Counted from the stretch's first letter, positions 39,443 to 60,573 are shown. The stretch: DNA of 64,000 bases from Zancudomyces culisetae HAW-14-8 (GCA_052426225.1 JBNJNM010000020.1:21848-85847); one strand, 5' to 3'. The notes: generated by a model not told the origin, from the letters alone. A program made the numbers and translations.

Positions 39443-42277
39443 TTATAAAACACACCTATCTCTTAACCAACTCATAGTTGCCTCTGTTCCTTTTTCTAAA
39501 ATCTGTCTTTTAGGTACTCTGAATCTATTTCCTTCAAGTTGCAGGTGTTTTATACTAGCCACAAATCCTAGTTCTGGCGGAATTGCACGGATCTCATTAT
39601 CAGACAAGTCCACATTCACTAATCCCTCCAACACGCAAAAGTTATTTATATCTTCAATCATGTTCTTCTTCAATCGCAATGTTTCTAGTAGCCTAGTATT
39701 TAGTATTGTTTCTCTCAGTGTACATTTTGCGTCATCTTTGTCTTGGCTGTTTTCACGTGTTCGAATATCTGTTAATCTGTTGTTGCTCAAATCCAACTCT
39801 CTTAACTCTGGAAATACTTGTCCCAGTTTTAACACTCTTTCTTTGTTACCATAATGGTTCAAACCTCCAAAGTGTGATATCTTATTGTTTGATAGATTTA
39901 ACACCTTTGTTTTTGCTAGCTTTTGACCAACTAGACTCGTGTTTTCATTTCTCAAAACTTCATAAAGTTCGTCAACGTTCAACAGCTGATTGTTACTTAA
40001 ATCTATTTCTTCCAGTTCACCTGTGTTCATGATACATATTAATTCAACCACCTCCAGGGGTATTTTTTCTAATCGATTGTTCTTCAAAACCAATTTTCTA
40101 ACATCAACTCCAATATTCTGATTCTTTACCGCATCCAATAAAGTCTTGATACTGATATCTGAACCATTGGCTTCATCAAGCTTCAAAACATCCAGCTTTT
40201 CTGACAGATCCATGGTCTTTCCTCCAACACTTTCAACCAAAGCCTTTAGCTTTTTATCACACTTGTCTTCCATTGTTTCTTGAACCATTTCGTGCACACC
40301 TCCCCCACCACCTATCCTCTGTTCGTTTTTATCAATATCCATCCACTCAACATCGATATCACTTCTTCTTTCATCGCCCGCCCCCGACATCCCCTCAAAC
40401 CTTTTAAAGTGCGCCTCTAGATGGCTTCGTGTCGTTCCCTGTGGCCTAGCTGAAAGTGGGTTACCCTCAAAGTCAACTCCAATCAAATCGTCACACTGTT
40501 TTATCAACTCTCTCGGCAAGCGCTTTATACGATTGTTGGATATGTCAATCCTTCTCAACTTTAACTTTCCGTCACCATGCCGACTAAATATACCCGAAAT
40601 ATCCTCAATTCCATTCTCCGCGATAGAGAGTATGGTCAATCTTGGCATCTGCAACGGATTGATCACACATGGCATTTTTGTCATATTGTTTTTAGAAAGC
40701 ATTAATGTCGATAGATTTGGAAATCGGATTTTATCTTGGTTCGCCTCATCTTTAAAAAGGCTTCTCAGTTCATTTCCACTAGCATCTAGGTACACAATAT
40801 TATCCAGTCCAATTTCGCCATCAACAGAATCCCCAAATTCAAATAAATACTCAAGTTTATTGTTTGATAAACCTAGTTCTTCCACGCCTCTTAGCCAACC
40901 TACACCCCTTGGCATCTCAGTGATGGTGTTGTTGCTCAGCTCAACCTTCTTTAATACCTGCATACCTTCCAGTTGGCTCTTGACCTTCTCAATCTTGTTG
41001 TTCGAAAGATCTAGTATCTTCAAACTTTTCTTTAAGCCGCCCATATCACTAGGTAGAATGGATATCTCATTTTTTTGCAAATATACCTCCTCTATACCTT
41101 CCAGTTCTGTGAGTACACTTGGAAACTCAGTAAATTTGTTTCCTGCAAGAGATACAACAGTTAAGTAATTAAACTCGCCAAAACTCGTGGGTAGCTGTTT
41201 AATTAAGTTGTAACTGAGATCAAGATGCTCCAGAGAGTTGAATACATTTATTTTCTCCTCGACCATCTCAATCTCATTCCCTGAAAAGTTCATGTACGTC
41301 ATTGCCTCATTTTCCCACCATTTTTCGGTGGAATCTGTGCCCAAATCCATATCTATAGCGCTCCTCTGTGCTTCATACATGTCATACACTGCCTTGGGAA
41401 TTTCTTTCAAGCCTCTATTGCTTAAATTTAGCCTTCCTTCTTTCCGTGCTCTCTGTATCATCTGCTGGAATATTTCGCTTTCGTCCATCTTTCTCTGCTT
41501 TACTCTCCATGGCTTAACCACCTCGGTTTTCCCCTTATCAGTAGTAGATGTGTGCAAGCTTGCTGCTCCTGCCCTAAAATTATTTTTACTTTGCACTGAT
41601 CTCGTCGCCGTGTCACTAACGTTTTTATTTAAAGCGTTTATTGTGTTATTTCTTGTGTACCTCCGTTCCACAGCAAGGCCCTGTTGAGACGAAACTTTGT
41701 TTGTATTCAAAACAGGATTCTTTTTAAACTCTGGAGAAATCTTCGAGAGTGAGAGATTTGTGTCTTTAGATACCAGATCTCTACCTACCGTGGTACCTTG
41801 TGCATTTACCTGTTGAAAACCAACTCTGGTAACGTTTGCCCTAGTAGAAAAAACCGAGCGATCCACCTTTCCAGTGTCTGTACGCATCGATGAAGTAAAT
41901 GTATTCGTTACAGCCGTTTTTCGAACGCTGGGTTGAAATGTTTTTCTTTCTGTCCCGCTTGCACCTTTGGCTTTAAGATCGTCGGATGGTTTGGTATATG
42001 AAGCATCACCGTCACGTCGAATGGTAGGGATTTTTTTGATTGATGCTATGTTTGTTGTTGGTATTCCTGTCTTTTTAGTCTGATTATCGCCTCCATCACT
42101 TTTCTCTGGGATTTTGGGGCCAACTCCAATCAACGAGAGCTTTTGAGGCGGGATTGACTCGTCACTATCTTTAGTAGCCGTACCTTTCCTAGAATTTGTA
42201 TAGGTTGTGGGCGATCTAACCCCATACCCACTGCTCTTCACGTGTTGATATTTGTTTGTTCTTTTTACACCATCCAT
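39443..42277 (-). CDS. Leucine-rich repeat protein, LRRC40-like, with long basic disordered N-terminus
   Basis: ARKEGRLNLSNRGLKEIP..VY, KWWE, many LxxLDLSxN repeats, and C-terminal IPPELG...LEGNRFRVPKRQILEKGT...LRDR; first ATG at 42277. Confidence 0.88.
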   Translation of the reverse strand: MDGVKRTNKYQHVKSSGYGVRSPTTYTNSRKGTATKDSDESIPPQKLSLIGVGPKIPEKSDGGDNQTKKTGIPTTNIASIKKIPTIRRDGDASYTKPSDDLKAKGASGTERKTFQPSVRKTAVTNTFTSSMRTDTGKVDRSVFSTRANVTRVGFQQVNAQGTTVGRDLVSKDTNLSLSKISPEFKKNPVLNTNKVSSQQGLAVERRYTRNNTINALNKNVSDTATRSVQSKNNFRAGAASLHTSTTDKGKTEVVKPWRVKQRKMDESEIFQQMIQRARKEGRLNLSNRGLKEIPKAVYDMYEAQRSAIDMDLGTDSTEKWWENEAMTYMNFSGNEIEMVEEKINVFNSLEHLDLSYNLIKQLPTSFGEFNYLTVVSLAGNKFTEFPSVLTELEGIEEVYLQKNEISILPSDMGGLKKSLKILDLSNNKIEKVKSQLEGMQVLKKVELSNNTITEMPRGVGWLRGVEELGLSNNKLEYLFEFGDSVDGEIGLDNIVYLDASGNELRSLFKDEANQDKIRFPNLSTLMLSKNNMTKMPCVINPLQMPRLTILSIAENGIEDISGIFSRHGDGKLKLRRIDISNNRIKRLPRELIKQCDDLIGVDFEGNPLSARPQGTTRSHLEAHFKRFEGMSGAGDERRSDIDVEWMDIDKNEQRIGGGGGVHEMVQETMEDKCDKKLKALVESVGGKTMDLSEKLDVLKLDEANGSDISIKTLLDAVKNQNIGVDVRKLVLKNNRLEKIPLEVVELICIMNTGELEEIDLSNNQLLNVDELYEVLRNENTSLVGQKLAKTKVLNLSNNKISHFGGLNHYGNKERVLKLGQVFPELRELDLSNNRLTDIRTRENSQDKDDAKCTLRETILNTRLLETLRLKKNMIEDINNFCVLEGLVNVDLSDNEIRAIPPELGFVASIKHLQLEGNRFRVPKRQILEKGTEATMSWLRDRCVL

Positions 42278-42923
42278 TTGTACGATACTAACATTGAGCC
42301 TTGGCGCTTTAAAACGCAAACCAAAAGAGAAACAATAAGTATTTAAATAGAATACAATTTTTGGTTTCTTGGTTGGGTTGTATCCTTTATTTTTGGAAAA
42401 GTGGAGACAACAAATAAAGCGGGGTAAAGGTTTGAAATGCCAGAAATTCAATCCGGGAAAAAATAGTCAGAAAGGTGATAAGGTCACTAATCTCGTAAAA
42501 TGGTAAAGTGTACCAAAGATACGAATTTACACATGGTTCCTATAATAAATGGTGTAGAGTAGATCATGTTTAAGCCATGGACGTAATATGACACGCTGTG
42601 TTACTACTGAGTAGTAAAAGTCGCATATACCCACTACTCAGCAGTCATATTTCGGCTTAAATGTAAAACCAGGCGCTCAAGCTTATGTACTCGAGTATAA
42701 ATCAGTTTATTGATTATTTAAATACCTAACCTAAAACAAACATCAGATACAAAATAAATCAATTATGTGACATTCAGATAATGCTAAAACATGTAAAATG
42801 CCAATGTGATGATAATAGTCATAGTAATAGTCATAGTAATGGTCATAGTGTGTTGATGATACAGCGTTTCAAAAATCACACCCTCTCCATTCCCTTCTTC
42901 TTTTTGACTCATTCATTCTTTTA

Positions 42924-43286
42924 CTAAAGCCAGTAGTACAAGATTCTCGCTGAGCTGTAGTACTTGTATGTTGACCCCAATCTCTTTTGTAAGTGTGCCT
43001 GTTCTTCACTAAACATCTGGTCCAAGTACTGGACAACCTCTGCTGCCTTTTCTGATTTGCCTGTATCTGGTGACTGCATTTCCTCCTTCAACTTTGTCAT
43101 GATTGCACGATCACTGGCTGCTTCTCCGTTCCCAACCATAATTACTGGCACCATGTTTGAGTTTCCAGTAACTGGTGTGTCTCTTGGCAATCCGTTGTTG
43201 TCTTGGACATTGATTGGTGCCGCTGGCATAGAAAGCACCCCTGTAACCAAACCGGCGGTCATAAATGTAGCTGCTGAGATTCTCAT
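42924..43286 (-). CDS. Secreted prepro-peptide precursor, copy A (120 aa; KR-released C-terminal 18-mer)
   Basis: MRISAATFMTAGLVTGVLS signal peptide, ~80-aa pro-region, LQKR|LGSTYKYYSSARILYYWL*; TATAAATA ~130 bp upstream. Confidence 0.85.
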   Translation of the reverse strand: MRISAATFMTAGLVTGVLSMPAAPINVQDNNGLPRDTPVTGNSNMVPVIMVGNGEAASDRAIMTKLKEEMQSPDTGKSEKAAEVVQYLDQMFSEEQAHLQKRLGSTYKYYSSARILYYWL

Positions 43287-43429
43287 TTTTGTGGTTTTTA
43301 CTTGAGTGTAGATGGTGTTTTGTATTGTATTGTTTTGTTTTGTTTGTATCAAACGGTTTTGTATCAATTGATATTGTGTGTAGATGATAAAATAAAGGAT
43401 GTAGTGAAGGGTATTTATACCTGTTTTGG

Positions 43430-43563
43430 ATGTATGTGTATATTTGTGTATGTGTATGACTATGTGTATATTTGTGTATATTTGTGTATATTTGTGTATA
43501 TTTGTGTATATTTGTGTATGCGTATATTTGTGTATGCGTATATTTGTGTATGCGTATATTTGT
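43430..43563. repeat. Compound (ATATTTGTGT / ATATTTGTGTATGCGT)n repeat next to the TATA box of copy A
   Basis: Direct reading; the partner at ~58022-58140 has a different unit arrangement. Confidence 0.9.
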
Positions 43564-43790
43564 AATGCTATTTAATCTACATTTACTTTGCTTCTTAAAA
43601 CTCAGTTCATATCTTAAACCATGTACTTTTTAAAAGATCATTGTACCTGTTCCTTGAAATTATCCACTAATGTTTTATAAAGGCATCTTTTAGACAAACT
43701 GTTTGTGAGTAATGAAATATAACACATTGTATTCTCGATCCTTGTAACATTTTAACTTCCAAAGGTCTTTATAAGCATTGTTTCATTTTG

Positions 43791-43874
43791 CACTTTCCAC
43801 TTTCCACTTTCCACTTTCCACTTTCCACTTTCCACTTTCCACTTTCCACTTTCCACTTTCCACTTTCCATTTTC
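43791..43874. repeat. (CACTTTC)n heptamer array, 12 units
   Basis: 11 perfect units plus one CATTTTC. Confidence 0.95.
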
Positions 43875-46800
43875 CTCAGTGTAATTTATCTACTACTATG
43901 TCCATTTATATTCTTACCAAATCTTAGCTTTACCAATGACGTTTACTGGTTGAACTGCAGCAATCAAATGTGGTGGTTTTAAAGCCAGATAAAGTTTTGG
44001 TATTTAAAAAGGATCTTTGAAATTCTAAACCATCTTCAATTTCCATCACTTTTATAATGGGTCTTTTAATTTTGTGCAAAATACTAAGAGCTTTCTGTTT
44101 ACACGTTTGGATAATTAAGGTTGGTAAATGGATGTGTATTTGGACTAAATAGCCATAACGAATACATTTATGGATTACAAAACACTTAGTATACAATTTT
44201 TGATCTGTTTCTTCCTTCAAAACACGTACTCGAGTGTTTCACCAAAGAATATCAAAAGTAGATCAGTGAATAATGGTTGGTAATTAATAACTAATGGTCA
44301 ATGAGCTAGGATATGCACTAACAACCCAACAATATCTAACTCTTCTGTTTTTTTCAGTAACAAACTGATCCAAAAAATATACTTTTTCAAACAACCACCG
44401 TATCTACAACCAGCATTTCAAAATGTATTCTGTGACTTTTTCTGCATTTTTACATGGTTCAAATCAACCAAGTACCAGAATACACACCACATTGAACGTT
44501 GTTTAGTAAACAACGATATTGGCTGAGGTAGTAGTTGATATACCTCATTTTTAATTTCTATCGTCACTAAAAAGTAGCAAACAACAGAAAATGAACAAAA
44601 AAAGTACAAATGGACAAAACAAGATCCAATGCGCTACAACTACATACACTACTATTGAGAAATAGTCAAACATGAAATGGTATAGCATTAATGCCCAGAC
44701 TGTACTTTTATCGAGTGTTCTATTTACATGTTTGTATTTGAACATTATGCCATTTATTGGCTATCAAAACTGACAATATACTAGCAGTTAGTCATTATTA
44801 ATGCTATTATTATCACTCACAAACTCACAAACTCACAAACTCATAAAAATAGATACCACACAAATCTCCGAAACGCAGAGTGTGTCTGTAGTAATAGCGA
44901 AAAATACTGAATTGTAAGAGTAAAAAACTCAGGATTTATTACGACTGTGTAACATTTTGTACGCTTGTGGTATAAAAAAGTCAAACAAAGCAAGGTATGG
45001 TATAAGAGTGGAAATGAGATGGGAATAGATAAAGGCAAATAGTATCATATCACCCAACACCAAGTTTACAGAGTAGAAGCGAGTGAGGTGGAATTGAATG
45101 ATATTTCTATTAATGTGTCTGTCTAGAATGTCGTACAGTGGTGAATAAATTCACATATCGGATATCGGATATCGGATATTTGTAGAGCTACTAATTGACC
45201 AATACGTATATCACTCCTTTTTTTGACCATTCAATTATTTGTTTTTGTTATTATTTTAGAAATTCCCGACTCTCAATAGGAACGGTTGGGCATTAGCTAT
45301 TTTAAATTGATGTTGTTATTATTTTCAATGCAATTTTAGCACTTTCAGCCATGTGGAGTAATCTGGCATAATTTTTTTAGATTTCATAAACAAGCCAATC
45401 TAAACACAGAATTTTTACTATTTGCGTAAATTTGATCAAGAAAATTAATGAACATAATGTAGTTTGGGGCTCTTCGCAGTTTTATGTGAAGCTTTGAAAA
45501 ATAGACATCCGTCTTTTATTTTTGAAAATGATACTCAGGTTATAGCATTATTCTCAATCCTTATACATTTAGATGAATAGATTATCTGGATGCTTATTAT
45601 TTAATGGGTGATATGTCGCTTTCGATCACGTCCATATATTTTAATACAGGACTATGAATTGATAATCCTTGGGCAGACTGTTATTGTTATCTGGGTTCAG
45701 TTAAAGTGGGCTTATAGCTTGCCTGTTTTTTTCAATCAATTGATGTAAAAAATGAGATTATTATGGATTTAATGTGTTTACTTGTAAGTAAAATTTTATG
45801 ATACAGGAAACGATAATCACAAATGGGATAAAGGTACCAATTCAAGCTGACGATTTCCGAAAGAGTATTTCTAGTAACATGAAAGTAAGATGATGGATAA
45901 AAAAAAAGTTATTACTCTTGCTTATTGTTGTTATAGCGGCAAATAAGCAAATGAGCTATACGTGCTCCATGGTGAAAAAAAAATCAGTGTGAAACTAGAA
46001 GTGTAGTTTTTATTTGTTTAGTGTCCAAAGCCAAAGCAAATGTTGGTAACTAGAGACGTCTTTTGTGGAGATATCAGTACAAAAGCCATGTAACTATGAA
46101 AAGTTTTGGGAGGAGGAGGTAAAATAGCAAGCTCTGCGCTTATAACAGCAGTTATTAAAGTGATACAACACTTTTGGTATTTTTATCACTAATCTTTTTT
46201 TTGGGGGAGGCGGTGGTGGTGGTAATGATGAAATTCATGAATGGGTAGAGAGGAGGGAGAGGGGTTAGTTCAGCGAAACAAAAAGCTAGATGTATTATCA
46301 TTTTGTTTGATTTTGGGTATTTTATTACCAAATTAAATTATTTTTTGAACGAAAAAAGATAAATTGGGTAGAACCTGAGTGTAAATAATAATCGATGCGA
46401 TCTGTATGGTGAAAAATAGCAGTATTGTATTGGTGTGCTAATTTTCATTATTTTGTGTAGGTTTGAGTGTGGAAAGTTGTGAGAAGTTATAGAAAAGCTG
46501 AATATACTCATAAAATGTATGTATAATCCACAGATAAAAGAGTGTCTGGTGGGGATATTAGGGTTATTGCCAATTGCAAGTTGTTTCCTCAAATCTCATC
46601 ACATGGTGAATATGTATTTTGCTTATTTATAAATAAATTGAATAAGTTTGGACCTATTCACTTATTAGGCTGTTATTGGTGGAATAGTTATAAATTGCTA
46701 ATTGAAAGAAATAAAGTTTAAGTATGGCAATAGAATCATATGAGGATTTGTAATAAGTGCAGCTAAAGCAGATATTATGGCGCTATTAAATGCATGTCGA

Positions 46801-47018
46801 TTGTAAAATAATCATAATTATTAATATAAACGTAAACTGTTCTCCTCAAACAAGTATATGAAAAGAACATGTTGTTAGCACCAGCATTTTCAAATGTAAA
46901 ACAACAAGAGTTTAAGATCAAGAGAATAATCAAACTTGCTGCGGTATGCATCGAGGTTGAACGAGTGTGGAAATAAATAAATAGGTATTAGTGCGCGGGG
47001 ATAGGTAAGGAATAAGTA

Positions 47019-47085
47019 GGGGAATGGGTAGAGGAGTGGGTAGAGGAGTGGGTAGAGGAGTGGGTAGGGGTTAGGGTAGAGGGAG
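47019..47085 (+). repeat. G-rich (GGGTAGAGGAGT)n tandem repeat, possible G-quadruplex
   Basis: About eight GGG tracts within ~65 bp. Confidence 0.65.
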
Positions 47086-48066
47086 TATATATGTTGGTTG
47101 AATGTGTGAATGAATGAATGTAAAAACGATTTCCTTTGTTTTACTTGCAACCAAGGAAAATGAACCGATGAATGGTTTTAAAGTATTATTAGTAGTAATT
47201 GCGAGATTTACAAATCAAAGTTGATTTCAATCCATTTTTTTTTGTAATGGAATGCAAATTCCCAACCAAAAGGAGAATATTTGCAGAAAAAAATAGTTCA
47301 AAAGGCTGATTAAAATGCAGATTTAATAAAAGCAGCAAAAATAAAAAATATAAAAATAAAAAAGCTTGGTAAACCATTTATGGCATTTAGTCTTGTGCTA
47401 TACATTATTCTCGGCTTTTAATTATTTTGTTCAACTTCATCTTCCCTGCATACTTATTTAAGTATGGACCAAAAGTTTTGAAGTAAAAGGGAGCTTATTT
47501 CCAGATAAATAGATAGAAGAATATTTACGATAACTGTAGGCGTATACTGAACGAAATACTAAAAGCCTGAAGCTGTAAAAGTATATAATAAATGCAACAA
47601 TAAAAGCAAAAAAAAAGTAATAAACAGAGGGTTTAAGAGGAACAGATTTATGAATTAGATATATATAACGTCAAAAAACGGCTAATTTGGTAGAGTCCAG
47701 ATATTAATTGCAAATAGAATTTATGGTTTACTGCAAAAAAAAAAGCATAATAAGTTTGAACAAGAGCAGTTACATTCAGTACAAAGATTGTAAACAATAT
47801 ATGAATAACGACATTGGGGGATGCACACATAAAGGAACAGACATCATATTAAAGAAAATAGAGTAAAAAGGACAATATAATAATTTTTAGCAGCGCTACA
47901 CGACACGTAAAAGAGAAAGCAAAATAAGCGTGTGCAAAGAGTGGCAGAAATAAAGAAAGAAGCAAATATAGAAATAGAACTACTTAATTCAACGAATTCT
48001 CGGTACGTATAAGAGAAACTTGTAGAAAACTCATAAAGAATAGAAAAAGAAAAAAGAAGAAAAAAA

Positions 48067-49839
48067 ATGTTAAAAGCAACTGGCTCAGAGGAAAAAGCAG
48101 TGGTAGGAGAAACCAAGAATGAGGTTGATATCGGAAATAGAGTAGAGGTGAGTGAGGAACAGAGTAGAGAAGAGGCTAAGGCCAAGAATAGAAGAGAAGC
48201 ACTAGCAGCATTAACAGCAGATAAGGGTGCTGTAGGTTCAGACAGGGAAGAGCAAAGAGAGAGAGAGAAAGTGGGTAGAACAAACAGGAGAAATACTATT
48301 ATGACAATGCGAGGGTATTACGGAAAGGCGGGAAATGTAGGAGGAACCAATGGAGCGAGTGGAATGGGAAGAGGTATGGGGATGGGAATGAGTATGGGGA
48401 TGGGTATGGGTATGGGAGTAGGTGGAGGACGTAGACCAGAGGACTTGTCTGGGGAGGCGCTTGAGCTGATGACAAACCGACCAGCAGATGTGATTCCCAA
48501 TGCGATAGTGGTCAAAAACATAAATTTTGCGGTAAGCCGAGCAGAATTCCTTTCAATAATGACGAGTCTGGGGCTGCCACTGCCATATGCATTTGACTAT
48601 CATTACGAGAATGGCAACTTTAAAGGGCTTGCATTTGGAAATTTCCGAAGCAACGAAGATACAGCTAGAGTGATAGTTACAATGGATGGATACAAGTTGT
48701 TGGGCCGAGCAATCAAGGTAGAATACAAAAAAACATTGCCCATGCATGACGACGATGCACAACACAACAAGGAGAGCCGTGAGCGTGGAGCAGCAGACCT
48801 CAGAGGAATTGGAGACATGGGAATCCGAAAGCAGCATGCGATGATGGATGAAGGTGTAATGGGGCGGGGTCGGCCACCAATGGGATTTGGGGGAGACGAA
48901 GAATACCAACCTGGAAATCTGGAATTTGACGAGAATGATTTGTTGCGGTTTGTAGATTTCCGTGAAAAGGACCCCAAGCTGCTATACAACGTCATCAACC
49001 ATTTCAGAAGCGACAACAGTGTGTCGGAGATGGAACTGCCACCAGCACTTAACCATTACCAACGCCAACTGACAATGTTGCTGGCTGAGCATTTTAAGCT
49101 CAACCACGAGACCAAAGGTTCGGGTACCCAGCGAAGCATTCGACTGTACAAAAATCTGGAAACACTGCTTGAGGCTGCAGAGGTCCGTCCAACCATGTCA
49201 ACCATGCTCTCGCCACAGTTTTCGCATCTTAACATCAACCCACCAAGGCAAGCGCGTGGACGGCCAATGTCGATGATGGGCAACATGGCACCGCCACGTA
49301 ACTCCAACCGCAACTCGCTGCTGTCAACATCCAACCTGGCTCTCCTGGGTCAGCAATCGGGCTTGGATTTCGACGACACTGCTCCACTCGAGAGTCTGGC
49401 GTCTGGGTTTATGCGGTCGCGCAGCTCCACTGTCAGTGGTACAAAGGGTGGTTTTACTCCACGCAACCACTCAAACATCTACAACACAACCGCCAGCGGG
49501 CCTCATCAGCCTCACCAACCCTCTTCTCCTGCCCTGTATGCTAGTTCTTCCACTCAGAAAAATATCAACATGGCATCCGAGGACTCTCCAAACGCCAGCG
49601 GCGATGCTCCGTCACAGCGACAGCAGCAGATTCGTATTTTGCAGGAAAAACGCAACAATCGTATCTCTGCAATCTTCAATGCTCCTCCTGTTCCTATCCA
49701 TGCCACTACCCCTGATACTCCGCAAGTACCCATAATCAGTATCCATAAATCTGACAGTAAAGCCATTCCCATCATCAGTCCAACCAGTCGCAGTTTGGTT
49801 GTTCCCTCTGATGCTGAAAATGCTTCTAACTCTGATTAG
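48067..49839 (+). CDS. PIN4: Pin4/Cip1-Cip2-like RNA-binding protein (RRM + R3H-like domain)
   Basis: VIPNAIVVKNINFAV...LPLPYAFDYHYENGNFKGLAFGNF...GRAIKVEYKK RRM; MELPPALNHYQRQLTMLLAEHFKLNHETKG R3H-like region. Confidence 0.85.
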   Translation: MLKATGSEEKAVVGETKNEVDIGNRVEVSEEQSREEAKAKNRREALAALTADKGAVGSDREEQREREKVGRTNRRNTIMTMRGYYGKAGNVGGTNGASGMGRGMGMGMSMGMGMGMGVGGGRRPEDLSGEALELMTNRPADVIPNAIVVKNINFAVSRAEFLSIMTSLGLPLPYAFDYHYENGNFKGLAFGNFRSNEDTARVIVTMDGYKLLGRAIKVEYKKTLPMHDDDAQHNKESRERGAADLRGIGDMGIRKQHAMMDEGVMGRGRPPMGFGGDEEYQPGNLEFDENDLLRFVDFREKDPKLLYNVINHFRSDNSVSEMELPPALNHYQRQLTMLLAEHFKLNHETKGSGTQRSIRLYKNLETLLEAAEVRPTMSTMLSPQFSHLNINPPRQARGRPMSMMGNMAPPRNSNRNSLLSTSNLALLGQQSGLDFDDTAPLESLASGFMRSRSSTVSGTKGGFTPRNHSNIYNTTASGPHQPHQPSSPALYASSSTQKNINMASEDSPNASGDAPSQRQQQIRILQEKRNNRISAIFNAPPVPIHATTPDTPQVPIISIHKSDSKAIPIISPTSRSLVVPSDAENASNSD

Positions 49840-49956
49840 TTTTCTCCACCTCTTTTTTTTTTCTTATTTTTTTTTAATTTAATTTATTATATTATATTAT
49901 ATTATTACTATGCTATTGCGTATATTTAATGCTATAAATATCCCAGCCAACACAAC

Positions 49957-51039
49957 TTAAAAAACTTTTAATCTCTCTTCAATCATTCGGAGTGTAGCCA
50001 AGTCCATTGCCAAATACTTGTGTCTCAGTATATCAAACAACAGCGCATCTGTAGCCTCCTCCATTTTGATCCCCAGAATGTTTCTACATGCCAACTGCAA
50101 ATTCTTCAATTCGTTGCTTTCGCTGCTACATTGTCTCTCAGCATCTGTCAATACCATCATATGCCCATTTGTCTTCATTACATCCTCACTACGGCTCACT
50201 AGTCCATGCTCATGCATCAATTCGACAAAGTCTCTAGTCTTGAAATTTGCCAGCTTCAAATCTTCAAATACTACCAGTTCATTTTGCAGGAACTTGGCAC
50301 TTAGCAGACTACGGAATCCGAGCTGCCACACCTTGCGTTGAAGCTCAGTTGCATGCGACTGTGGCTGTGGCCCATGCGCCACTGCTCCTGTTCGGAACTG
50401 TGGTGCACGATGTGTACCAATTCTTGCCTTACCACGCCCCTTTTGTGATGCCTGTTTCTTGGCACTTCCACGTATATCGCTGATTGTCTTTGTGGAATGT
50501 GTGCCCTGTCGCAGACTGTTGCGCTCGTAGGTCACACATCGATGCAGTATATCCCCGCGGATTGTTGCATTGAACACTGTGCTGTCCAGCGCGATCATTT
50601 TGACTGGTGTGTATGGATTGTTGATATCCTGCACCATTGTATATACTGGCTGTGGAGTGAATAGTGGGTGGTCGTTGTGTTGTTTGAATCCATACTTGGG
50701 ATCATATTCTATTTACACATATATTGTTAGCACATCTTTTTTCTTTTCTTTTCTTTTCCTTTCTTTTCTCTCCTCTTGCTTGGGAAAAAAAATATAAAAC
50801 AAATATGATTTACCTAAATCTACTTGCTGTGCTATTCCACCATCTTTTACCCCTTCGTATTGTTCCCCTGTCGTTGTATTCGCCAGTACGCTATATCGTT
50901 GTTGTTGAGTTTTTTTTGAAACTTGGTTGGCTAATGCGCCCGAAAGAACGCTGTACGCTTTGCCGATCGGTTTAGAATTTTTGCTGAGGCCTTGCAGGGT
51001 TCTACTAGACTGCATCGAAAATAATCTATTCGGAATCAT
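49957..51039 (-). CDS. YML6: Mitochondrial large ribosomal subunit protein uL4m; exons 51039-50814 and 50708-49957
   Basis: Presequence; RGDILHRCV, RQGTHSTKT, QKGRGKARIG and GAVAHGP; intron GTAAAT...GCTAAC...AG in frame. Confidence 0.93.
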
Positions 51040-51867
51040 TTTAGCGTGTACAGTTCCCTCTATGTATTCGTTTTTTTATTATACTTTTGGTTAACTGATT
51101 GCGAATTCTGATTCAAATTCTAAAAGTTTGTATCAGACAGAAAAAAAACTAACCCAGGATTTAACAAAAACGAATTGCAATAAAATGATAACGATTCAGG
51201 TCTACTAGCTCATCCTATTCTCCAAAATACCAGAGAAAAGCTATCGTTTTCTGGTGTTTTTTTGATTTTTTTCCCTTACAAAAGCATGTTTACTATACCC
51301 GTCAAATCAAAATCAAAGAAGACAAAAAAAATTTTTTTTTAGCAATATGGTTTTTTGCTGCAACAAACTGATTCAACAGGCATATAAAGAGCCATCTGTT
51401 ATACAGAAGAACCTTGGTACATCTCAATGAGCAGAAGCGTAGGATGTGCTGGCTGGTTTCTAAAATATACACATTGGCACTTGTTCTCTACAAACCCTAA
51501 TACATTGTTCTAGCATATCTTTATTTTGCCAACAATTCCAGTTCGGCGAAAAATCACACTATTTTTTTCCCTGTCATTCTCACGCCAAATCCGTAAATTA
51601 ACAATTTAAATTATCGTGATTTTATCTTTTTTAGTTTAGTTATAATTTTTATTTACTCAATTAATTTTGCAGTCATTTAGTAAAACCTCACTACTTGGCA
51701 CATTTCAACATAACTCTTCATCGAGTATTATTTGAAACAGGTTTCTATTTTTGAAAGTTTGAAAACCATTTCAAATATCCTTCATAGGCATTCTCCCTGA
51801 TTAAACCTTAATATACCAACCTAACTACGAAAGATTTGCATCAAAAGTTCGCTTACGATTTTCCAAG

Positions 51868-54800
51868 ATGTTCAACTACCTATTGAATCTCAAGTCGGGG
51901 ACCGAGTTGGAAAATTTCATTTTCGGAATTGTTGTAGTACTGGTGTCTATCCTATCTGTTAAAGGTAAATCCGGTTACTCTTGCAACAAATGTTGCAGTT
52001 TGAAAAATTCTACAATCCTCATTTAGGGTATTTTGCCACCCGTATCTGTATTTTATTTGTGTTCTTGGTTACTGGAGGCGAATATTGTTATGAACAAGTA
52101 CCACTACTCAAAATAGAAGCGTATATTACCCATGATTTGACCAACGGTATCAATTTAGATTCGATGGCTTTGGTATTTTGTAAGTGACTGAATCGAGCTG
52201 TTATTACTTTGTTCCTTTATATTATGTACACTGAGAAATATAAACCCTGTCTTTTTATTGTATTTTTCTTTGGTCAGGATATTGGAGTTTATAGTGCAAC
52301 ATTGTTTAACTACACATGCTTATCTAAAAATGCCATTCTTTTTCCCGCAATAGCATTTTGCATGCTTTCAGGGTTGACTTTTTACATTGTGTACGGAATA
52401 CTAAACGGTGATTCAAACATTATCGAGCGAACAAACCCCATCGGTAGAAAACGTAACCATGTGCATAATCATATTCGACCAGAGTCCCAAGAAGCGTCGC
52501 TTTGGGGAATACCATGCCACAACTTCAGGTATTTTTTTTTAAACTTTTATATTGCAGCTTCTTTAGGCGCATTTGATGTTGCTTATGAGCGGGTTTTATG
52601 GCTGTTCTATTTGCACATCATGAAGTACTTATTAGCTAATCGGTGCACAAAATGGTCGCTAAAAAAACAAAACAAATAATTACCACAATAGGCCAAATGT
52701 CAACAATGGGTTGATATATGCGGTACTCCTTTCGCCTTTGGTTCTACTTTCAATGACGAGTTTGGAACATCGCCTTATCCAGCTGGATTTGGACAGACTG
52801 CACAACTATACATGTAAATACAACAAAAGATTATGTTTATTTTTTTTCTTTTTTTTCTTTGTATATTTAATGGAAATAATACACACCTGGACATATTTAA
52901 ACAGTAAATTGTACTAATCCATTTGTTTGGGTACTATTTCTATGACAGGGTGGTTGGTATCACTGCAAATACACGGATTTTCGACCCTAATGTCGATCTC
53001 CTTGGAAAAAAAGTTACACCCAGTATTCACGAGATTCCAAAAAATAATCACATTTGGCTCTGCATTGATCCCACTGTTATTGTTTAAGCTCATCTTACAT
53101 TTCGGTAATGTCCTTAATACACACAGTTGTGTATAGCCCAACTATTATATGTGTTTAATCACCAACAATGCTATTTTTTTAGTATCAGTGTTAAGCTTTG
53201 AAGAAGGATGTTCTAAGCTTGTACTTGTATATATCGCCTAATAGATTTTGCGATGATTCCCATGTTTTTCACAGTGACGCTGATGCAACTTTTTGTAATG
53301 ATGCTCCCAACCAAGATGGCTAAAAGCTTTTCTTTTGCAGAAACAACATTGATCTCGCAAGCTATCGTATTTTGTATTGTTACTTATATCTCAGGTTCCA
53401 TCGACAAGGTTAGTTGCTCTAAAACTAAAAATCAAGAATGATTGTTTTTAGCTTAATTTATCGCGATTCGAGCAATATAACAATTATTTCTATTGACTAT
53501 TTCTACGTGTTGTGGCTCTCTCATACTGAATCATGATTGATGTATACCTTATATTGAAAAATAAATAAATAGAATTCAAGTGCAAATAGTGAAGTGGCAA
53601 GAGTGCAGATATTTTTAATCTGTTCAGTTGTTTCAATGGTTGTCACCTCACTTCTTTTGCTCTTTATGAAGCCTAAATCGATTACCAACACTCTGGATGG
53701 TATAAGCACAGAAACCCACAAATTGCGAGTAAAAAACTTTTTAGGATTAACCCGCTATGTATTCTGCTATTTGGTCGGAATATTGGTGCTGTATATCGGT
53801 TTTTACCTCCATGCAAAGGTTGATCTTATACTATGGTAAGTATTTTAAACTACAAACTGTTTGTTTCTAGCTTACTCATACCTTTTACTGTGATACCCCC
53901 CTTTTTTTTGGCTAACGTTGTTGTCCAATCTTTCAAATATCGAAATACCAGGGTGCTCGAATTTACTTTTTTGGACGTGAGAAACTGCATCCTTTGTTTC
54001 TACTGGATCATATTGATATCTATTTCCGCTGGCCTGTACCTTTTACTTCCCAAATCATCACTATCCAACAACTCGTCACTGGCACTGCATCTTCGGCGAA
54101 AGTATTACCACCTTTTGATCATATTTATGCTCGTCCCTGCCATAAACCTATCAAGTAATTGGACCTCTCTTGGATTATCGGTGGGGCTGTTTGCCATGTG
54201 TATAGTCGAATCTATTCGTGTAATCGACATTCATCCTATTTCAAGTATTATTGATGGGTTTTTGGCCGACTTTGTTGATGAAAAGGATTCGGGTTTTAAC
54301 ATTACATCACACTTTTATCTCCTCTTGGGGTGCGCTCTCCCAATCTGGCTCAACTCGTAAGAACCTCTTTAAAAAAGTATTTGAATTATGCTTTGCGAGC
54401 GAATTGAGCTAAAATGGTTTTTTTTCTATGCAAATACGTAGATTTGGTTCCATAACTATGTACGCAGGTATAATCACACTCGGTGTGTCTGATTCTGTGG
54501 TAAATTTTTCTACTTCCACCTTGTATATGCTAGTGACTATTTCGCTTCCCAACACATGTTTTTTGACTAAGCCAAATCTCTGCAATAATATATAATATGT
54601 ACAATATTTACATAGGCTTCGATCGTTGGTCAGTTGTATGGAAAAAGTAAATGGTTTAGAACCAAAAAGACCGTTGAAGGTTCACTGGGATTTATTTTTT
54701 CAATGCATTTCATGTTTATCATTGTATACCTTGTCACATATGGCAGGTATTCGGTTTTTACATTCACTTTAAATGTAAGTTGCCAGCACTCAGCTATTAT

Positions 54801-55164
54801 ACTATGTTTATATTCAAACGTTTTTCTATTTTACTATAAATTCCAGTGTATCACAATCCAAACTGGAAGGTAAATATAAACCCTTGGATAAATACCTGTA
54901 GGTTTTGTGTATAACCTTTATATCATTGATTGTTGGTAAGTGAGACAGATTTAATTGCTAAAACTACTATACTTTTATATACTTTTCTATTGTCTTTGTT
55001 GAATCGCCCATTTCTCTCACTTTATAAATAGTAACATTACCACAATACTTTGTTAACAAAAACTAGGTCTGCTGGAAGCATTAACACTACAAAATGACAA
55101 CCTGATTATCCCCTTGGCTACACTAGTTTTGTTCAACTTCCTTTTTCCAATCCAGCCATATTAG
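51868..55164 (+). CDS. SEC59: Dolichol kinase (multi-exon polytopic membrane protein; internal exon limits approximate)
   Basis: LRRKYYHL, DEKDSG..ITSHFYLLLGCALPIW, GIITLGVSDS, ASIVGQLYGKSKW..TKKTVEGS and LLEALTLQNDNLIIP; stop TAG at 55162-55164. Confidence 0.88.
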
Positions 55165-55419
55165 ATTATTGATTAGAAGGTTTTACATGTATTTTAATAA
55201 ACATTGTCAAAAATAAACCGGATTATTTGAGCAAAAGATAAAAAGCGATATTAACGATTTTATCTATTGGAATAACAATGCATACTAGCCTAAATGAAAG
55301 CACCAAGGCCAAGTAAACTCGATATTGATAACGCAGTTGAAGTAGAGTAACAATCAATACACTTCTCCATGCACTTCTACAACAATACCTCTCCCCCAGC
55401 TTCTTTTTATACTATCTTA

Positions 55420-56126
55420 TTACTCGGATTTGGCGGTATCGAAGGAGTCTGATTGTTGGGGAACCGAAAGGCCCACTCTTCTCGCAGTTTTTTCAACAAG
55501 CTCCTTTTGTGTCATTCCTGGGTTGTAGAGTTTTATCAAGTCCTATTATTGCCATTCAAAAAAAATTAAACTACAAAACCCAAATCTGAGAGATTGATAT
55601 GATATGAATCAACAGTAAACTGCGAATGAAAGCTTACATTGTATTTTCTGCTGTTGTACAGGAATGTGTTCACATCGAGAGCATCTTTGAGCTTCAAATC
55701 CAGGTCATTGAATCTGAAATCTGAATAGTTATTCTGTTTAAGTTTAGATGCCGAGACACCGTTAAGTCTGTTCTCGATGGTGATCGCTCGAAGCTCGTTT
55801 TCCCAAAATTTGTTTTGATTCACCTTAGTAACCTATAAAAAAAGGGGAGGGAGATTTGTGATTAGTTTTGCAAAAATATAGCTATTACAGATAAAATAGC
55901 ATGAACTAAAACGCCAAGGTACTATTAGGTTTGGGGAAAAATACAGTAAGAGGCTGGCTTGGATACCAAACTGACGATAAAATATATCTAGCACAAAATG
56001 ACGATTTCAAACCACGAAAATCTCGATCATAAACCCATTCATACAACAAAAAGTAAAATATACCTGTTTTCTAAGACTCCTTTTAATTTGTCGGTATAGC
56101 TTGATGTCTTCTATAATTCTCCTCAT
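55420..56126 (-). CDS. FMC1: ATP synthase assembly factor Fmc1 homolog; exons 56126-56064, 55832-55638, 55542-55420
   Basis: Spliced MRRIIEDIKLYRQIKRSLRKQ...DALDVNTFLYNSRKYNDLIKLYNPGMTQKELVEKTARRVGLSVP. LYR-like N-terminus and the YNPG...TA.RVGL..P C-terminal signature of Fmc1. Confidence 0.85.
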
Positions 56127-57689
56127 TTTATGTTGGTATTTTATTGATTTTGGTCTGAATCTGAGTGTAAAAGAGAGTTTTGGTTTGATATTCGAGATTA
56201 AAAAGTGGGCACCAAAATCAAAGGACAAAATTTTTCAAATCACAAATCGAGTTTAAAACTATTGGTTGAGAAATAAGCTAAAAACGATGAAAGAAGGGAT
56301 CAAGAGGCTACTTAATCAGAAGGATATCATGGGTATAGATGTAGCCAAGAAAAGGAGTGATATACGTATTGGTCAATTAGTAGCTCTACAAATATTCGAT
56401 ATCCGATATGTGAATTTATTCACCACTGTACGACATTCTAGACAGACACATTAATAGAAATATCATTCAATTACACCTCACTCGCTTCTACTCTGTAAAC
56501 TTGGTGTTGGGTGATATGATACTATTTGCCTTTATCTATTCCCATCTCATTTCCACTCTTATACCATACCTTGCTTTGTTTGACTTTTTTATATCACAAG
56601 CGTACAAAATGTTACACAGTCGTAATAAATCCTGAGTTTTTTACTCTTACAATTCAGTATTTTTCGCTATTACTACAGACACACTCTGCGTTTCGGAGAT
56701 TTGTGTGGTATCTATTTTTATGAGTTTGTGAGTTTGTGAGTTTGTGAGTGATAATAATAGCATTAATAATGACTAACTGCTAGTATATTGTCAGTTGTGA
56801 TAGCCAATAAATGGCGTAATGTTCAAATACAAACATGTAAATAGAACACTCGATAAAAGTACAGTCTGGGCATTAATGCTATACCATTTCATGTTTGACT
56901 ATTTCTCAATAGTAGTGTATGTAGTTGTAACACATTGGATTTTGTTTTGTCCATTTGTACTTTTTTTGTTCATTTTCTGTTGTTTGCTACTTTTTAGTGA
57001 CGATAGAAATTAAAAATGAGGTATATCAACTACTACCTCAGCCAATATCGTTGTTTACTAAACAACGTTCAATGTGGTGTGTATTCTGGTACTTGGTTGA
57101 TTTGAACCATGTAAAAATGCAGAAAAAGTCACAGATTACATTTTGAAATGCTGGTTGTAGATACGGTGGTTGTTTGAAAAAGTATATTTTTTGGATCAGT
57201 TTGTTACTGAAAAAAACAGAAGAGTTAGATATTGTTGGGTTGTTAGTGCATATCCTAGCTCATTGACCATTAGTTATTAATTACCAACCATTATTCACTG
57301 ATCTACTTTTGATATTCTTTGGTGAAACACTCGAGTACGTGTTTTGAAGGAAGAAACAGATCAAAAATTGTATACTAAGTGTTTTGTAATCCATAAATGT
57401 ATTCGTTATGGCTATTTAGTCCAAATACACATCCATTTACCAACCTTAATTATCCAAACATGTAAACAGAAAGCTCTTAGTATTTTGCACAAAATTAAAA
57501 GACCCATTATAAAAGTGATGGAAATTGAAGATGGTTTAGAATTTCAAAGATCCTTTTTAAATACCAAAACTTTATCTGGCTTTAAAACCACCACATTTGA
57601 TTGCTGCAGTTCAACCAGTAAACGTCATTGGTAAAGCTAAGATTTGGTAAGAATATAAATGGACATAGTAGTAGATAAATTACACTGAG

Positions 57690-57794
57690 GAAAATGGAAA
57701 GTGGAAAATGGAAAGTGGAAAGTGGAAAGTGGAAAGTGGAAAGTGGAAAGTGGAAAGTGGAAAGTGGAAAGTGGAAAGTGGAAAGTGGAAAGTG
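57690..57794. repeat. (GAAAGTG)n heptamer array, 15 units
   Basis: GAAAATG, GAAAGTG, GAAAATG, then 12x GAAAGTG; three units longer than the left arm. Confidence 0.95.
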
Positions 57795-58284
57795 CAAAAT
57801 GAAACAATGCTTATAAAGACCTTTGGAAGTTAAAATGTTACAAGGATCGAGAATACAATGTGTTATATTTCATTACTCACAAACAGTTTGTCTAAAAGAT
57901 GCCTTTATAAAACATTAGTGGATAATTTCAAGGAACAGGTACAATGATCTTTTAAAAAGTACATGGTTTAAGATATGAACTGAGTTTTAAGAAGCAAAGT
58001 AAATGTAGATTAAATAGCATTACAAATATACGCATACACAAATATACACATACACAAATATACACATACACAAATATACACATACACAAATATACACAAA
58101 TATACACATAGTCATACACATATACAAATATATACATACATCCAAAACAGATATAAATACCCTTCACTACATCCTTTATTTTATTATCTACACACAATAT
58201 CAATTGATACAAAACCGTTTGATACAAACAAAACAAAACAATACAATACAAAACACCATCTACACTCAAGTAAAAACCACAAAA

Positions 58285-58647
58285 ATGAGAATCTCAGCAG
58301 CTACATTTATGACCGTCGGATTGGTTACAGGGGTGCTTTCTATGCCAGCGGCACCAATCAATGTCCAAGACAACAACGGATTGCCAAGAGACACACCAGT
58401 TACTGGAAACTCAAACATGGTGCCAGTAATTATGGTTGGGAACGGAGAAGCAGCCAGTGATCGTGCAATCATGACAAAGTTGAAGGAGGAAATGCAGTCA
58501 CCAGATACAGGCAAATCAGAAAAGGCAGCAGAGGTTGTCCAGTACTTGGACCAGATGTTTAGTGAAGAACAGGCACACTTACAAAAGAGATTGGGGTCAA
58601 CATACAAGTACTACAGCTCAGCGAGAATCTTGTACTACTGGCTTTAG
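58285..58647 (+). CDS. Secreted prepro-peptide precursor, copy B (120 aa; mature peptide 58591-58644)
   Basis: Same protein as copy A except A11V in the signal peptide; TATAAATA at ~58152. Confidence 0.85.
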   Translation: MRISAATFMTVGLVTGVLSMPAAPINVQDNNGLPRDTPVTGNSNMVPVIMVGNGEAASDRAIMTKLKEEMQSPDTGKSEKAAEVVQYLDQMFSEEQAHLQKRLGSTYKYYSSARILYYWL

Positions 58648-58917
58648 TAAAAGAATGAATGAGTCAAAAAGAAGAAGGAATGGAGAGGGTGTGATTTTTG
58701 AAACGCTGTATCATCAACACACTATGACCATTACTATAACTATTACTATGACTATACCATCACATTGGCATTTTACATGTTTTAGCATTATCTGAATGTC
58801 ACATAATTGATTTATTTTGTATCTGATGTTTGTTTTAGGTTAGGTATTTAAATAATCAATAAACTGATTTATACTCGAGTACATAAGCTTGAGCGCCTGG
58901 TTTTACATTTAAGCCGA

Positions 58918-58984
58918 AATATGACTGCTGAGTAGTGGGTATATGCGACTTTTACTACTCAGTAGTAACACAGCGTGTCATATT
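58918..58984 (+). other. Stem-loop downstream of the peptide gene (mirror copy 42585-42651, minus strand)
   Basis: ACTGCTGAGTAGTGGG (58924-58939) pairs with TTTACTACTCAGTAGT (58951-58966): 16 bp with 4 G-U pairs. An outer AATATGAC/GTCATATT pairing is also possible. Confidence 0.6.
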
Positions 58985-60573
58985 ACGTCCATGGCTTAAA
59001 CATGATCTACTCTACACCATTTATTATAGGAACCATGTGTAAATTCGTAAATTTTTGTACACCTGATTATTTTGTGTCGTATGTACACCTCAACTCTATC
59101 AATGTTTTTTATTACCAACCTTCTCACTTGTTGCTTTTCTGTTACTCTCTGTTTAGTTCTTAGTTCAGGGTACTCTAAAAATGACTTTCATGTCTCTCTG
59201 GATCAATATATAACATTATAACCTCTATTATGATACTACTCTATTTTTAGTATTACATGAACGTAACTTTTTTTTATAACACTACCTTTTTCCTTGGCGA
59301 CTTCATTCTGAGCCGGAGTTATCAGGATACTATTGCAGAGTTTGCAAATCAGCTATTTTTTCACCATTATTTTTATGCCACAGCTCGGTTAGTGATAAAA
59401 ATGTAAGCCTTTTGCACAGTAAAACATATACTTAGTTAATATACAACTCCACAAACACTCACTTCACCTGTAGTTCATATCCTTTTCAGTTTCTTATCCA
59501 TATTATCGCAAAATGGTCAGTAAAAAAATTAGTTTTTCTTAGTTTCGCTAATCTAGACTGCGTACAGTAGCTATTGGCTAGAAGCAAGTTTATGACCAAC
59601 CACATACCAGTAGAGGCAAGGATATAATTAAAAGGAACTACGTTAGAATACTTCACCATTCACCTTCAAGGGTCTGATAATATTATGTGGATAACTTTGT
59701 ATTTAGAACTACAATACTGATATACCTCATTTTTCATCCAATATAAGCGTATCCTATGGCTAGCATGGCGAATTGTTATATACTTTAAAATCTAGACACT
59801 TTAGGGGTAAATCCTAAATAAAAAAAGCGAGCTAGATCCCATATTAAACTCAATTTCTCAACCAAGCACCCAATTGCTGCTTTTCTGGTTCTACCACCTG
59901 TGGTTCCATTACTTTTTTTTTTGGATATTTATGCACCAAAGCAGTTATCAAAAAATGGGGGTATACTTGAACTAAAGAGCCAGTAGGAGCCCTTAAAAGA
60001 AAAGTGCCAGATATATTGCAGCTTAAATAATGATATTCATAGTACTATACCATAGTAAAAAGAGGTTATAACTAAAATTAATGTTAGACCCAGAACAAAG
60101 CTGGAATATATTATTGCATTTAGGTTATGTCTTGCTTTCATGAGTGAATTTGGATCTACAAAATGGTCCCAGCTTCCAAAGTTATGTTTTATGCCTAATA
60201 ACATATTTATTTTAAAAAAAAGTAGCAAGCGACTTGTTCAAACAGTCTAGAAAATTTAGCATTAACGTTTGAGTATTAAATGTTGATCAAAGTTACTATT
60301 TGAGGCATTCCTAAGTGGAAAATCTGACATAGAAAAATAGGCGATATAAGCTTTAGTAAAATTGTTTTTTTAGTTGCTATAAAAGCTCTATAAAAGAACT
60401 TTAGTCAAAAAAATCAATAAACGCCAGGAGTCAAAGAACAATATTAAGACTTATTTTTTTGTATTACCAGTTTTTCTAAGTGCCAGATTTTGAGTCAAAT
60501 ACATAATACTACTCAGATATAGAGGATTGCAGAACAAATATCAACCATAAGGGGGGGTAAAAGAAAAGTAAAT

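Follow-up and report, generated by a model that had tools for sequence, protein, structure and literature searches.

Structure of the inverted repeat

Zancudomyces culisetae, a member of the Harpellales (Zoopagomycota), is a gut symbiont of mosquito larvae and not a yeast. In its strain HAW-14-8, a kilobase-scale inverted repeat brackets a block of ordinary genes, and each arm of the repeat carries a gene for a putative secreted peptide. The window analyzed here, 64,000 nt in length, comprises the last 64 kb of the 85.8-kb contig C20 of this strain. The left arm (42520-45225) and the right arm (56346-59049), both of 2.7 kb, were delimited by a repeat search and MAFFT alignment; they are 98-99% reverse-complementary to each other and enclose a unique core of 11.1 kb (11,120 bp; 45226-56345). 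An earlier note, made from the sequence alone, had described a repeat of this kind, and the arm coordinates obtained here lie within about 5 bp of those it gave. The strain is represented by a PacBio-HiFi assembly of 27.2 Mb in 26 contigs, including mitochondrial ones (PMC12611240); the genome sequence searched in this work comprised 27.09 Mb in 25 contigs.

On C20, alignment of the two arms reveals 24 columns with single-nucleotide polymorphisms (SNPs) and six indels, all six of which fall within tandem repeats or homopolymers. The arm boundaries are sharp and the flanks unique, since the 600 bp beyond each boundary score below the means of shuffled sequence in local alignment and no residual homology was found there. 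The picture of arms that differ by SNPs and repeat counts and are set in unique flanks is thus borne out. No target-site duplication was found, either at the level of the arm or at that of the whole unit.

Each arm contains an open reading frame (ORF) of 120 codons that encodes a predicted pre-pro-peptide, the left copy being located at 42924-43286 on the minus strand and the right copy at 58285-58647 on the plus strand, so that both face outward. In either case, 1,939 bp upstream and 404 bp downstream of the ORF are included in the arm, an anatomy that fits the proposal of the earlier note that the duplication took in an entire expression unit. The upstream part of the arm (43287-45225 on the left, 1.9 kb) is gene-free and rich in tandem repeats, with units that include the 7-bp CACTTTC, TG/TA-rich sequence and ATATCGG, and the copy numbers of these repeats vary between arms. 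No gene is called in this part in the annotation of strain COL-18-3, a 96-aa ORF located in it (43930-44220) has no Pfam family, and searches of the arms for Rfam families and tRNAs returned none.

Copies of the locus in two strains

When the whole HAW-14-8 genome was searched, the arm was found four times, twice on C20 and twice on contig C21 (2119920-2122609 and 2133780-2136469). BLAST comparison of the window with 44 kb of C21 showed that the two contigs are collinear, in reverse, at about 99% identity, with two long alignments, each of which connects an outer flank, by way of an arm, with the core. The core lies in the same orientation relative to both flanks on the two contigs. The first part of the window aligns with C21 near 2.22 Mb, and the comparable stretch of this 3.4-Mb contig spans 2114971-2220359; the start of contig C20 found no placement on C21, and a 20-kb query was dominated by an ankyrin family. 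Relative to C21, C20 is a candidate for an unpurged haplotig or allele, for the second nuclear type of a heterokaryon, or for a true segmental duplication. The HMG-box matches on contigs C6 and C12 likewise come as pairs with identical scores, and the HAW-14-8 assembly therefore contains several near-duplicate regions, whether haplotigs, heterokaryon or real segmental duplications.

For comparison with a second strain, three contigs of the 2016 short-read assembly of COL-18-3 (GCA_001969505.1) were recovered via exact-protein look-ups. The first of these (L022; LSSK01000762.1) links a leucine-rich-repeat (LRR) gene, over the outer boundary, to 849 bp of arm in which the peptide ORF is contained. 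Another (L023) begins 1.35 kb inside an arm and crosses the inner boundary into the side of the core that carries a PIN4-like gene, while the remaining contig (L017) extends from the 3' end of the PIN4-like gene over the gene for mitochondrial ribosomal protein uL4 (uL4m) and the remainder of the core and, beyond the opposite inner boundary, takes in 2.6 kb of arm. The arm boundaries in COL-18-3 coincide with those in HAW-14-8, and a single duplication origin, older than the split of the two strains, is therefore indicated; the unique core of the two strains differs at about 0.6% of sites. The left and right arms of COL-18-3 are distinct sequences: their inner 700 bp contain 17 mismatches plus gaps, the next 690 bp are 99.4% identical, and the 773-bp overlap between L022 and L017 is 100% identical. 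Because the outer part of the arm is identical, these contigs do not resolve the orientation of the core.

An assembly artefact was considered as an explanation of the repeat and is ruled out by the C21 copy together with the independent short-read assembly of COL-18-3, in which the boundaries match. The contention that the arms are not an assembly echo is accordingly upheld, the same structure being present on C21 and identical boundaries being crossed by all three COL-18-3 contigs.

Concerted evolution of the arms

Six arms were aligned, namely the left and right arms of C20 (C20_L and C20_R), of C21 (C21_L and C21_R) and of COL-18-3 (COL_L, available in two pieces, and COL_R). Across these three copies of the locus, the arms cluster by genome and not by position. 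Nine sites (43126, 43239, 43268, 43269, 43334, 44034, 44470, 44866 and 44892) are fixed between the strains and common to both arms, and among the six aligned arms there is no site that splits all left from all right arms. The only position-specific sites, 42535 and 42552, are situated at most 33 bp from the outer boundary, where C21_L and COL_L have the left-arm state in common; this shared state is a true positional signal. C20_L carries the right-arm state at both sites, which implies that it has been overwritten to the very edge.

Divergence between the two arms of one locus is distributed unevenly. The arms of C21 differ at three sites, all in the outermost 45 bp, and those of C20 at 24. 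COL_L possesses 13 private substitutions, all within 44547-45106 and absent from the other five arms, and this block looks like an unconverted remnant of an older left/right divergence that has been erased in HAW-14-8. The segment that carries them (L023:704-1403, equivalent to window positions 44538-45225) adjoins sequence that is 99.4% identical to the other COL-18-3 arm, and a conversion-tract boundary appears to lie near 44540 in COL_L. It is the comparison of three versions of the locus that makes such tract edges visible.

Other variants are shared across arms in conflicting ways. At sites 44748 and 44767, C20_L agrees with both C21 arms against C20_R and the COL-18-3 arms, whereas at site 45175 it is C20_R that agrees with both C21 arms, against C20_L and the COL-18-3 arms. 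These splits fail the four-gamete test and, as each of them places the derived state in three arms, at least one conversion event is needed to account for them. Comparison of C20 with C21 shows greater divergence in the arms (31 SNPs in 5,360 bp) than in the unique core (18 SNPs in 6,972 bp; Fisher p = 0.006), as would be expected of repeat-rich non-coding DNA in which variants are shuffled between arms. On the other hand, the tandem-repeat arrays of the upstream part mutate faster than conversion homogenizes them. The arrays at 43496-43510, 43791-43856 and 45155-45161, with their right-arm equivalents, differ in copy number among all four HAW-14-8 arms.

Genome-wise clustering, derived states present in three arms and visible tract ends therefore point to recurrent non-allelic gene conversion with variable tract ends. 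The arm-to-arm gene conversion envisaged in the earlier note is supported by the comparison with COL-18-3, in which the arms group by genome.

The peptide gene and its predicted product

The left and right ORFs differ in a single residue, A11V, with V11 encoded by the right copy. Their product has a hydrophobic, signal-peptide-like N-terminus (judged by eye), a charged pro-region and a single dibasic Lys-Arg (KR) site at residues 101-102, after which the protein concludes with an 18-residue peptide (42927-42980 in the left gene, 58591-58644 in the right gene) that contains five Tyr and one Trp and ends in YYWL. The precursor lacks a CAAX box and tandem peptide repeats, and its C-terminal half is free of Cys. 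One gene for a kexin-type protease with a P-domain is present in the genome, on contig C15, and processing of the precursor is therefore feasible.

The ORF is intact in all six arm copies, and in its last 66 codons, which include the KR site and the 18-mer, not a single nucleotide varies. Seven codons vary (three with synonymous and four with nonsynonymous changes), all of them within codons 6-54. The protein is 98% identical to the hypothetical protein AX774_g3895 of Z. culisetae COL-18-3. In the NCBI annotation of that strain, a further model (P0002, LRRC40-like, 961 aa; L022:71-3672) joins the first 108 codons of the left peptide gene, by a splice, to the neighboring LRR gene, corresponding to 39443-43286 on the minus strand of the window. 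This peptide-LRR fusion is probably a prediction artefact; alternatively, it may hint at read-through transcription from the left arm.

Four copies of the peptide gene, and no paralogue, are present in the genome. A word index of 5.8 billion sequences yielded the COL-18-3 protein as the only relative, and an exhaustive search of 1.84 billion representatives returned this protein and two marginal low-complexity matches only. No Pfam family, including MF_alpha_N and MF_alpha, was matched even at E<=10, and no relative was found in the PDB. The top-ranking Atlas cluster, as judged from language-model features, is MF_alpha (score 0.80, 129 shared features), but shuffled proteins reach this score a third of the time, and the similarity is within the range of chance. 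As judged from these searches, the peptide is an orphan without relatives outside Z. culisetae. Our best guess from its sequence features is a secreted, Kex2-released, species-specific peptide; the dosage-amplified signaling peptide proposed in the earlier note is a putative role.

Core and flanking genes

The core contains a gene for a PIN4-like RNA-binding protein (48067-49839, plus strand), with Pfam R3H and RRM_1 domains and a 100%-identical match (P0122) annotated as 'RNA-binding protein PIN4, partial'. The uL4m gene follows at 49957-51039 on the minus strand (Ribosomal_L4, 3e-49); its main exon occupies 49957-50637, its upstream exon region is approximate, and a 317-aa model exists in COL-18-3. 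A run of hydrophobic ORFs on the plus strand (53253-54873, limits approximate) represents a multi-exon membrane protein gene, probably a dolichol kinase (SEC59/DOLK). Its segment 53833-54360 falls with DOLK clusters in Atlas (0.93, 211 shared features), no Pfam-A match was obtained for this gene, and PF01148, used as a proxy for SEC59, matched only an unrelated locus on contig C13. Among the genes that the earlier note had placed between the arms, the PIN4-like and uL4m genes are thus confirmed by Pfam and SEC59 is supported by Atlas; FMC1 was not confirmed in the core by Pfam.

PIN4 and uL4m are neighbors in Furculomyces boomerangus as well, with G6PD close by in both genomes, which indicates that the core is ancestral chromosomal DNA and not cargo. 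In F. boomerangus (L025:8654-11982, L026), uL4m and PIN4 form a tandem pair (+,+) with uL4m upstream, unlike in Zancudomyces, where uL4m is downstream of PIN4 on the opposite strand; the difference points to a small local rearrangement within the present core. At the PIN4 loci of Smittium mucronatum and Furculomyces, neither an inverted repeat nor a peptide-like ORF was found within 10 kb on either side.

The left outer flank carries a gene for an LRRC40-like leucine-rich-repeat protein (39443-42295, minus strand), directly downstream of the left peptide gene and on the same strand; beyond a conspecific match, the protein search with this flank returned only LRR noise. Farther out, a cluster of genes for large ankyrin-repeat proteins (686, 808 and 1139 aa) and a trypsin-like gene occupies 1500-25320 of the window, and 70-91% identical copies on C7, C8, C9, C11, C15, C21 and C23 mark it as a dispersed multi-copy family. 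Transposable elements were considered for the repeats at 1.5-25 kb and ruled out, as Pfam identifies a multi-copy ankyrin/trypsin gene cluster.

A second inverted repeat of comparable size is present on contig C8 (L010:3728-6076 and L011:5352-7727, that is, C8:1487727-1490075 and C8:1501352-1503727). Its 2.4-kb arms, with 93% identity, surround an 11.3-kb spacer that contains porin-like and MINDY-like genes, and each arm includes a low-complexity ORF of 359 aa that reads inward. Apart from the CACTTTC microsatellite, these arms are unrelated to those of the present locus.

Interpretation and alternative explanations

The locus is very probably an old inverted segmental duplication of a 2.7-kb peptide unit that has since been homogenized by recurrent intrachromosomal gene conversion. 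This interpretation builds on direct observations: the structure itself, its occurrence in both strains and on two HAW-14-8 contigs, and the pattern of concerted evolution. The sequence of events was probably as follows. A 2.7-kb unit, composed of a species-restricted gene for a secreted pre-pro-peptide together with 1.9 kb of DNA upstream and 0.4 kb downstream, was copied in mirror orientation to the far side of an 11.1-kb block of ordinary genes. The two arms have since been homogenized repeatedly by non-allelic gene conversion, with tracts that usually fall in the middle of the arm and often end short of its edges. The net effect would be that the peptide gene is present in two nearly identical copies, each with a promoter of its own; its product may enter the secretory pathway and be cut after KR by the one kexin-type protease of the genome, releasing a Tyr-rich 18-mer. 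Occasional resolution of the crossover type could invert the core while leaving both peptide expression units untouched.

Several points weigh against parts of this account. The mosaic of shared variants in HAW-14-8 could owe something to exchange between C20 and C21 and not between arms. The identical stretches of COL-18-3 may be collapsed short-read consensus, which would inflate the count of sites shared by both arms in the outer part; four of the strain-shared sites, however, are located in the inner 1.35 kb, come from two separately assembled COL-18-3 contigs and are free of this problem. As for the gene itself, the case is built on the intact ORFs, an earlier gene model at NCBI and features of the sequence, and the variable codons (four nonsynonymous, three synonymous) are too few to demonstrate purifying selection.

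A simpler history, in which a recent and neutral inverted duplication left two arms that are alike through youth and have undergone no conversion, would be compatible with high arm identity taken alone. It is already contradicted, and we regard it as very improbable: the inverted repeat has the same boundaries in two strains that have diverged at about 0.6% of sites in the unique core, the arms share strain-specific states at nine sites, derived states occur in three of the four HAW-14-8 arms, and in COL_L 700 bp with 13 private differences adjoin about 1.5 kb of assayed sequence with 99.4-100% identity to COL_R. Terminal inverted repeats around cargo are also reminiscent of large DNA transposons, and C8 provides at least one further inverted repeat with a similar geometry, so that the locus might be envisaged as a composite transposon of 16.5 kb, with terminal inverted repeats of 2.7 kb, or as the result of two insertions of a 2.7-kb element. 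This explanation is scarcely credible, given that no target-site duplication occurs at either level, that no transposase or integrase domain was found in the core ORFs scanned, and that the arm occurs nowhere else in the genome beyond this locus and its C21 twin. Moreover, the core with its PIN4-uL4m adjacency conserved in Furculomyces is ancestral chromosomal DNA, and the C8 repeat has only a microsatellite in common with the present arms.

Recombination between the arms might also invert the 11-kb core, with both orientations coexisting as at the Ogataea MAT locus or on chromosome XIV of Saccharomyces cerevisiae and with a possible regulatory role. Arms of 2.7 kb at 99-99.9% identity are an ample substrate for recombination, the conversion seen here shares intermediates that can resolve as crossovers, and in S. 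cerevisiae an equally homogenized 4-kb inverted repeat flips on evolutionary timescales (PMC9731477). However, both resolvable copies (C20 and C21) are in the same orientation and the COL-18-3 contigs are uninformative in this respect, so the interval gains no support as one that exists in two orientations, as the earlier note had suggested. The complete peptide expression units sit inside the arms and would be unaffected by an inversion; as the units of the two arms are complete and practically identical, there is no switch logic of the Ogataea kind. In addition, the core consists of housekeeping genes with no MAT-type or HMG gene, and no recombinase-like ORF was found among the main core ORFs scanned (not all six frames). 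We therefore consider an invertible segment of this type unlikely, although inversion as an occasional by-product is mechanistically plausible, with one orientation observed. A bolder combination, in which the core flips in populations and the twin orphan genes encode a secreted Tyr-rich 18-mer that signals from cell to cell or to the host in the mosquito gut, is a distinctly long shot; if true, a zygomycete-grade fungus would possess a peptide signaling system, none being known from such fungi.

The general architecture of the precursor, that of a secreted, Kex2-processed peptide, lends some appeal to a mating-related locus, with the twin genes as a peptide pheromone and the bracketed interval as a MAT-like region. 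The nearest Atlas cluster, MF_alpha, points in this direction as well, though at a score that a third of shuffled proteins attain. Little else agrees with it. There is no Pfam MF_alpha_N or MF_alpha match at E<=10, the precursor would release one mature peptide and has no tandem repeats, and it lacks the Cys or CAAX box of a lipopeptide pheromone. STE2 (PF02116) and STE3 (PF02076) gave no match in six-frame translation of the genome, a weak negative since the controls cannot register for fungal families, and none of the 17 HMG-box matches in the genome is located on C20 or within 2.11-2.22 Mb of C21. Zygomycete sex loci are built on HMG (sexP/sexM) genes, and peptide pheromones are not known outside Dikarya. 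The analogy with yeast MAT and pheromone loci drawn in the earlier note consequently finds no support in a harpellalean fungus whose peptide gene has no linked HMG-box gene and no CAAX box, repeats or MF_alpha match, and we assign a mating role only a very slight chance.

The locus is a clean, naturally occurring case in which an inverted gene pair has evolved in concert, here in a host-associated fungus of an early-diverging lineage. In combination with the C8 repeat, it suggests a recurrent route by which secreted-protein genes are doubled in this genome, namely inverted segmental duplication followed by conversion. The peptide itself is a candidate species-specific secreted factor of a mosquito-gut symbiont. 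As a structural curiosity, the locus is of modest importance.

Comparison with known systems

Several described systems share individual features with the present locus. The precursors of alpha-factor and of KEPs, the latter reported in Zoopagomycota too, likewise possess a signal peptide, a pro-region and KR directly before a short aromatic peptide (PMC6339444, PMC7329392). They contain tandem peptide repeats, however, and the definition of KEPs requires at least two repeats separated by dibasic sites (PMC6339444), unlike the protein described here, which has one KR and one C-terminal peptide, no Pfam match and no homologue outside Z. culisetae. Lipopeptide pheromones, such as a-factor and the Cryptococcus MF pheromones, have a C-terminal CAAX box on a short precursor and a STE3 receptor; the present precursor has no CAAX box and ends in YYWL, and no match to STE3 was obtained, itself a weak negative.

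With regard to overall geometry, the MAT flip/flop systems of Ogataea polymorpha and Komagataella are similar in that an inverted repeat of about 2 kb brackets 10-20 kb (PMC5720833). In these yeasts, MATa and MATalpha are located at the two ends, silencing depends on a centromere or telomere, and inversion is induced (PMC5720833). Here, in contrast, the core is of a housekeeping nature and both arms contain complete, identical units, so that there are no alternatives between which the orientation could decide. Another parallel is provided by Candida albicans, whose long inverted repeats (Todd et al. 2019, PMC6591007) are dispersed, often contain ORFs and occur in a mostly clonal, host-associated fungus. 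Several inverted pairs per genome serve there as substrates for inversion and gene conversion (PMC6591007), and the C8 repeat shows that the present genome also has more than one such pair. Inversions, copy-number changes and loss of heterozygosity have been seen directly at repeat breakpoints in C. albicans (PMC6591007), whereas none was observed here.

The closest described system is the flip/flop region of S. cerevisiae chromosome XIV, a 24-kb region with homogenized 4-kb inverted repeats that re-inverts on evolutionary timescales (Salzberg et al. 2022, PMC9731477). The yeast region differs in that both orientations are documented across strains and species and the genes in its arms have a demonstrated role in sporulation, whereas the present locus is known in one orientation (two copies, one strain), with 2.7-kb arms around 11 kb and an orphan secreted-peptide gene in each arm. 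In both cases, kilobase-scale inverted repeats composed of duplicated, fast-evolving, lineage-restricted genes surround ordinary genes, and the arms are homogenized within a strain or species and cluster by genome. The present locus thus indicates that the type of architecture described on yeast chromosome XIV is not confined to Saccharomycotina.

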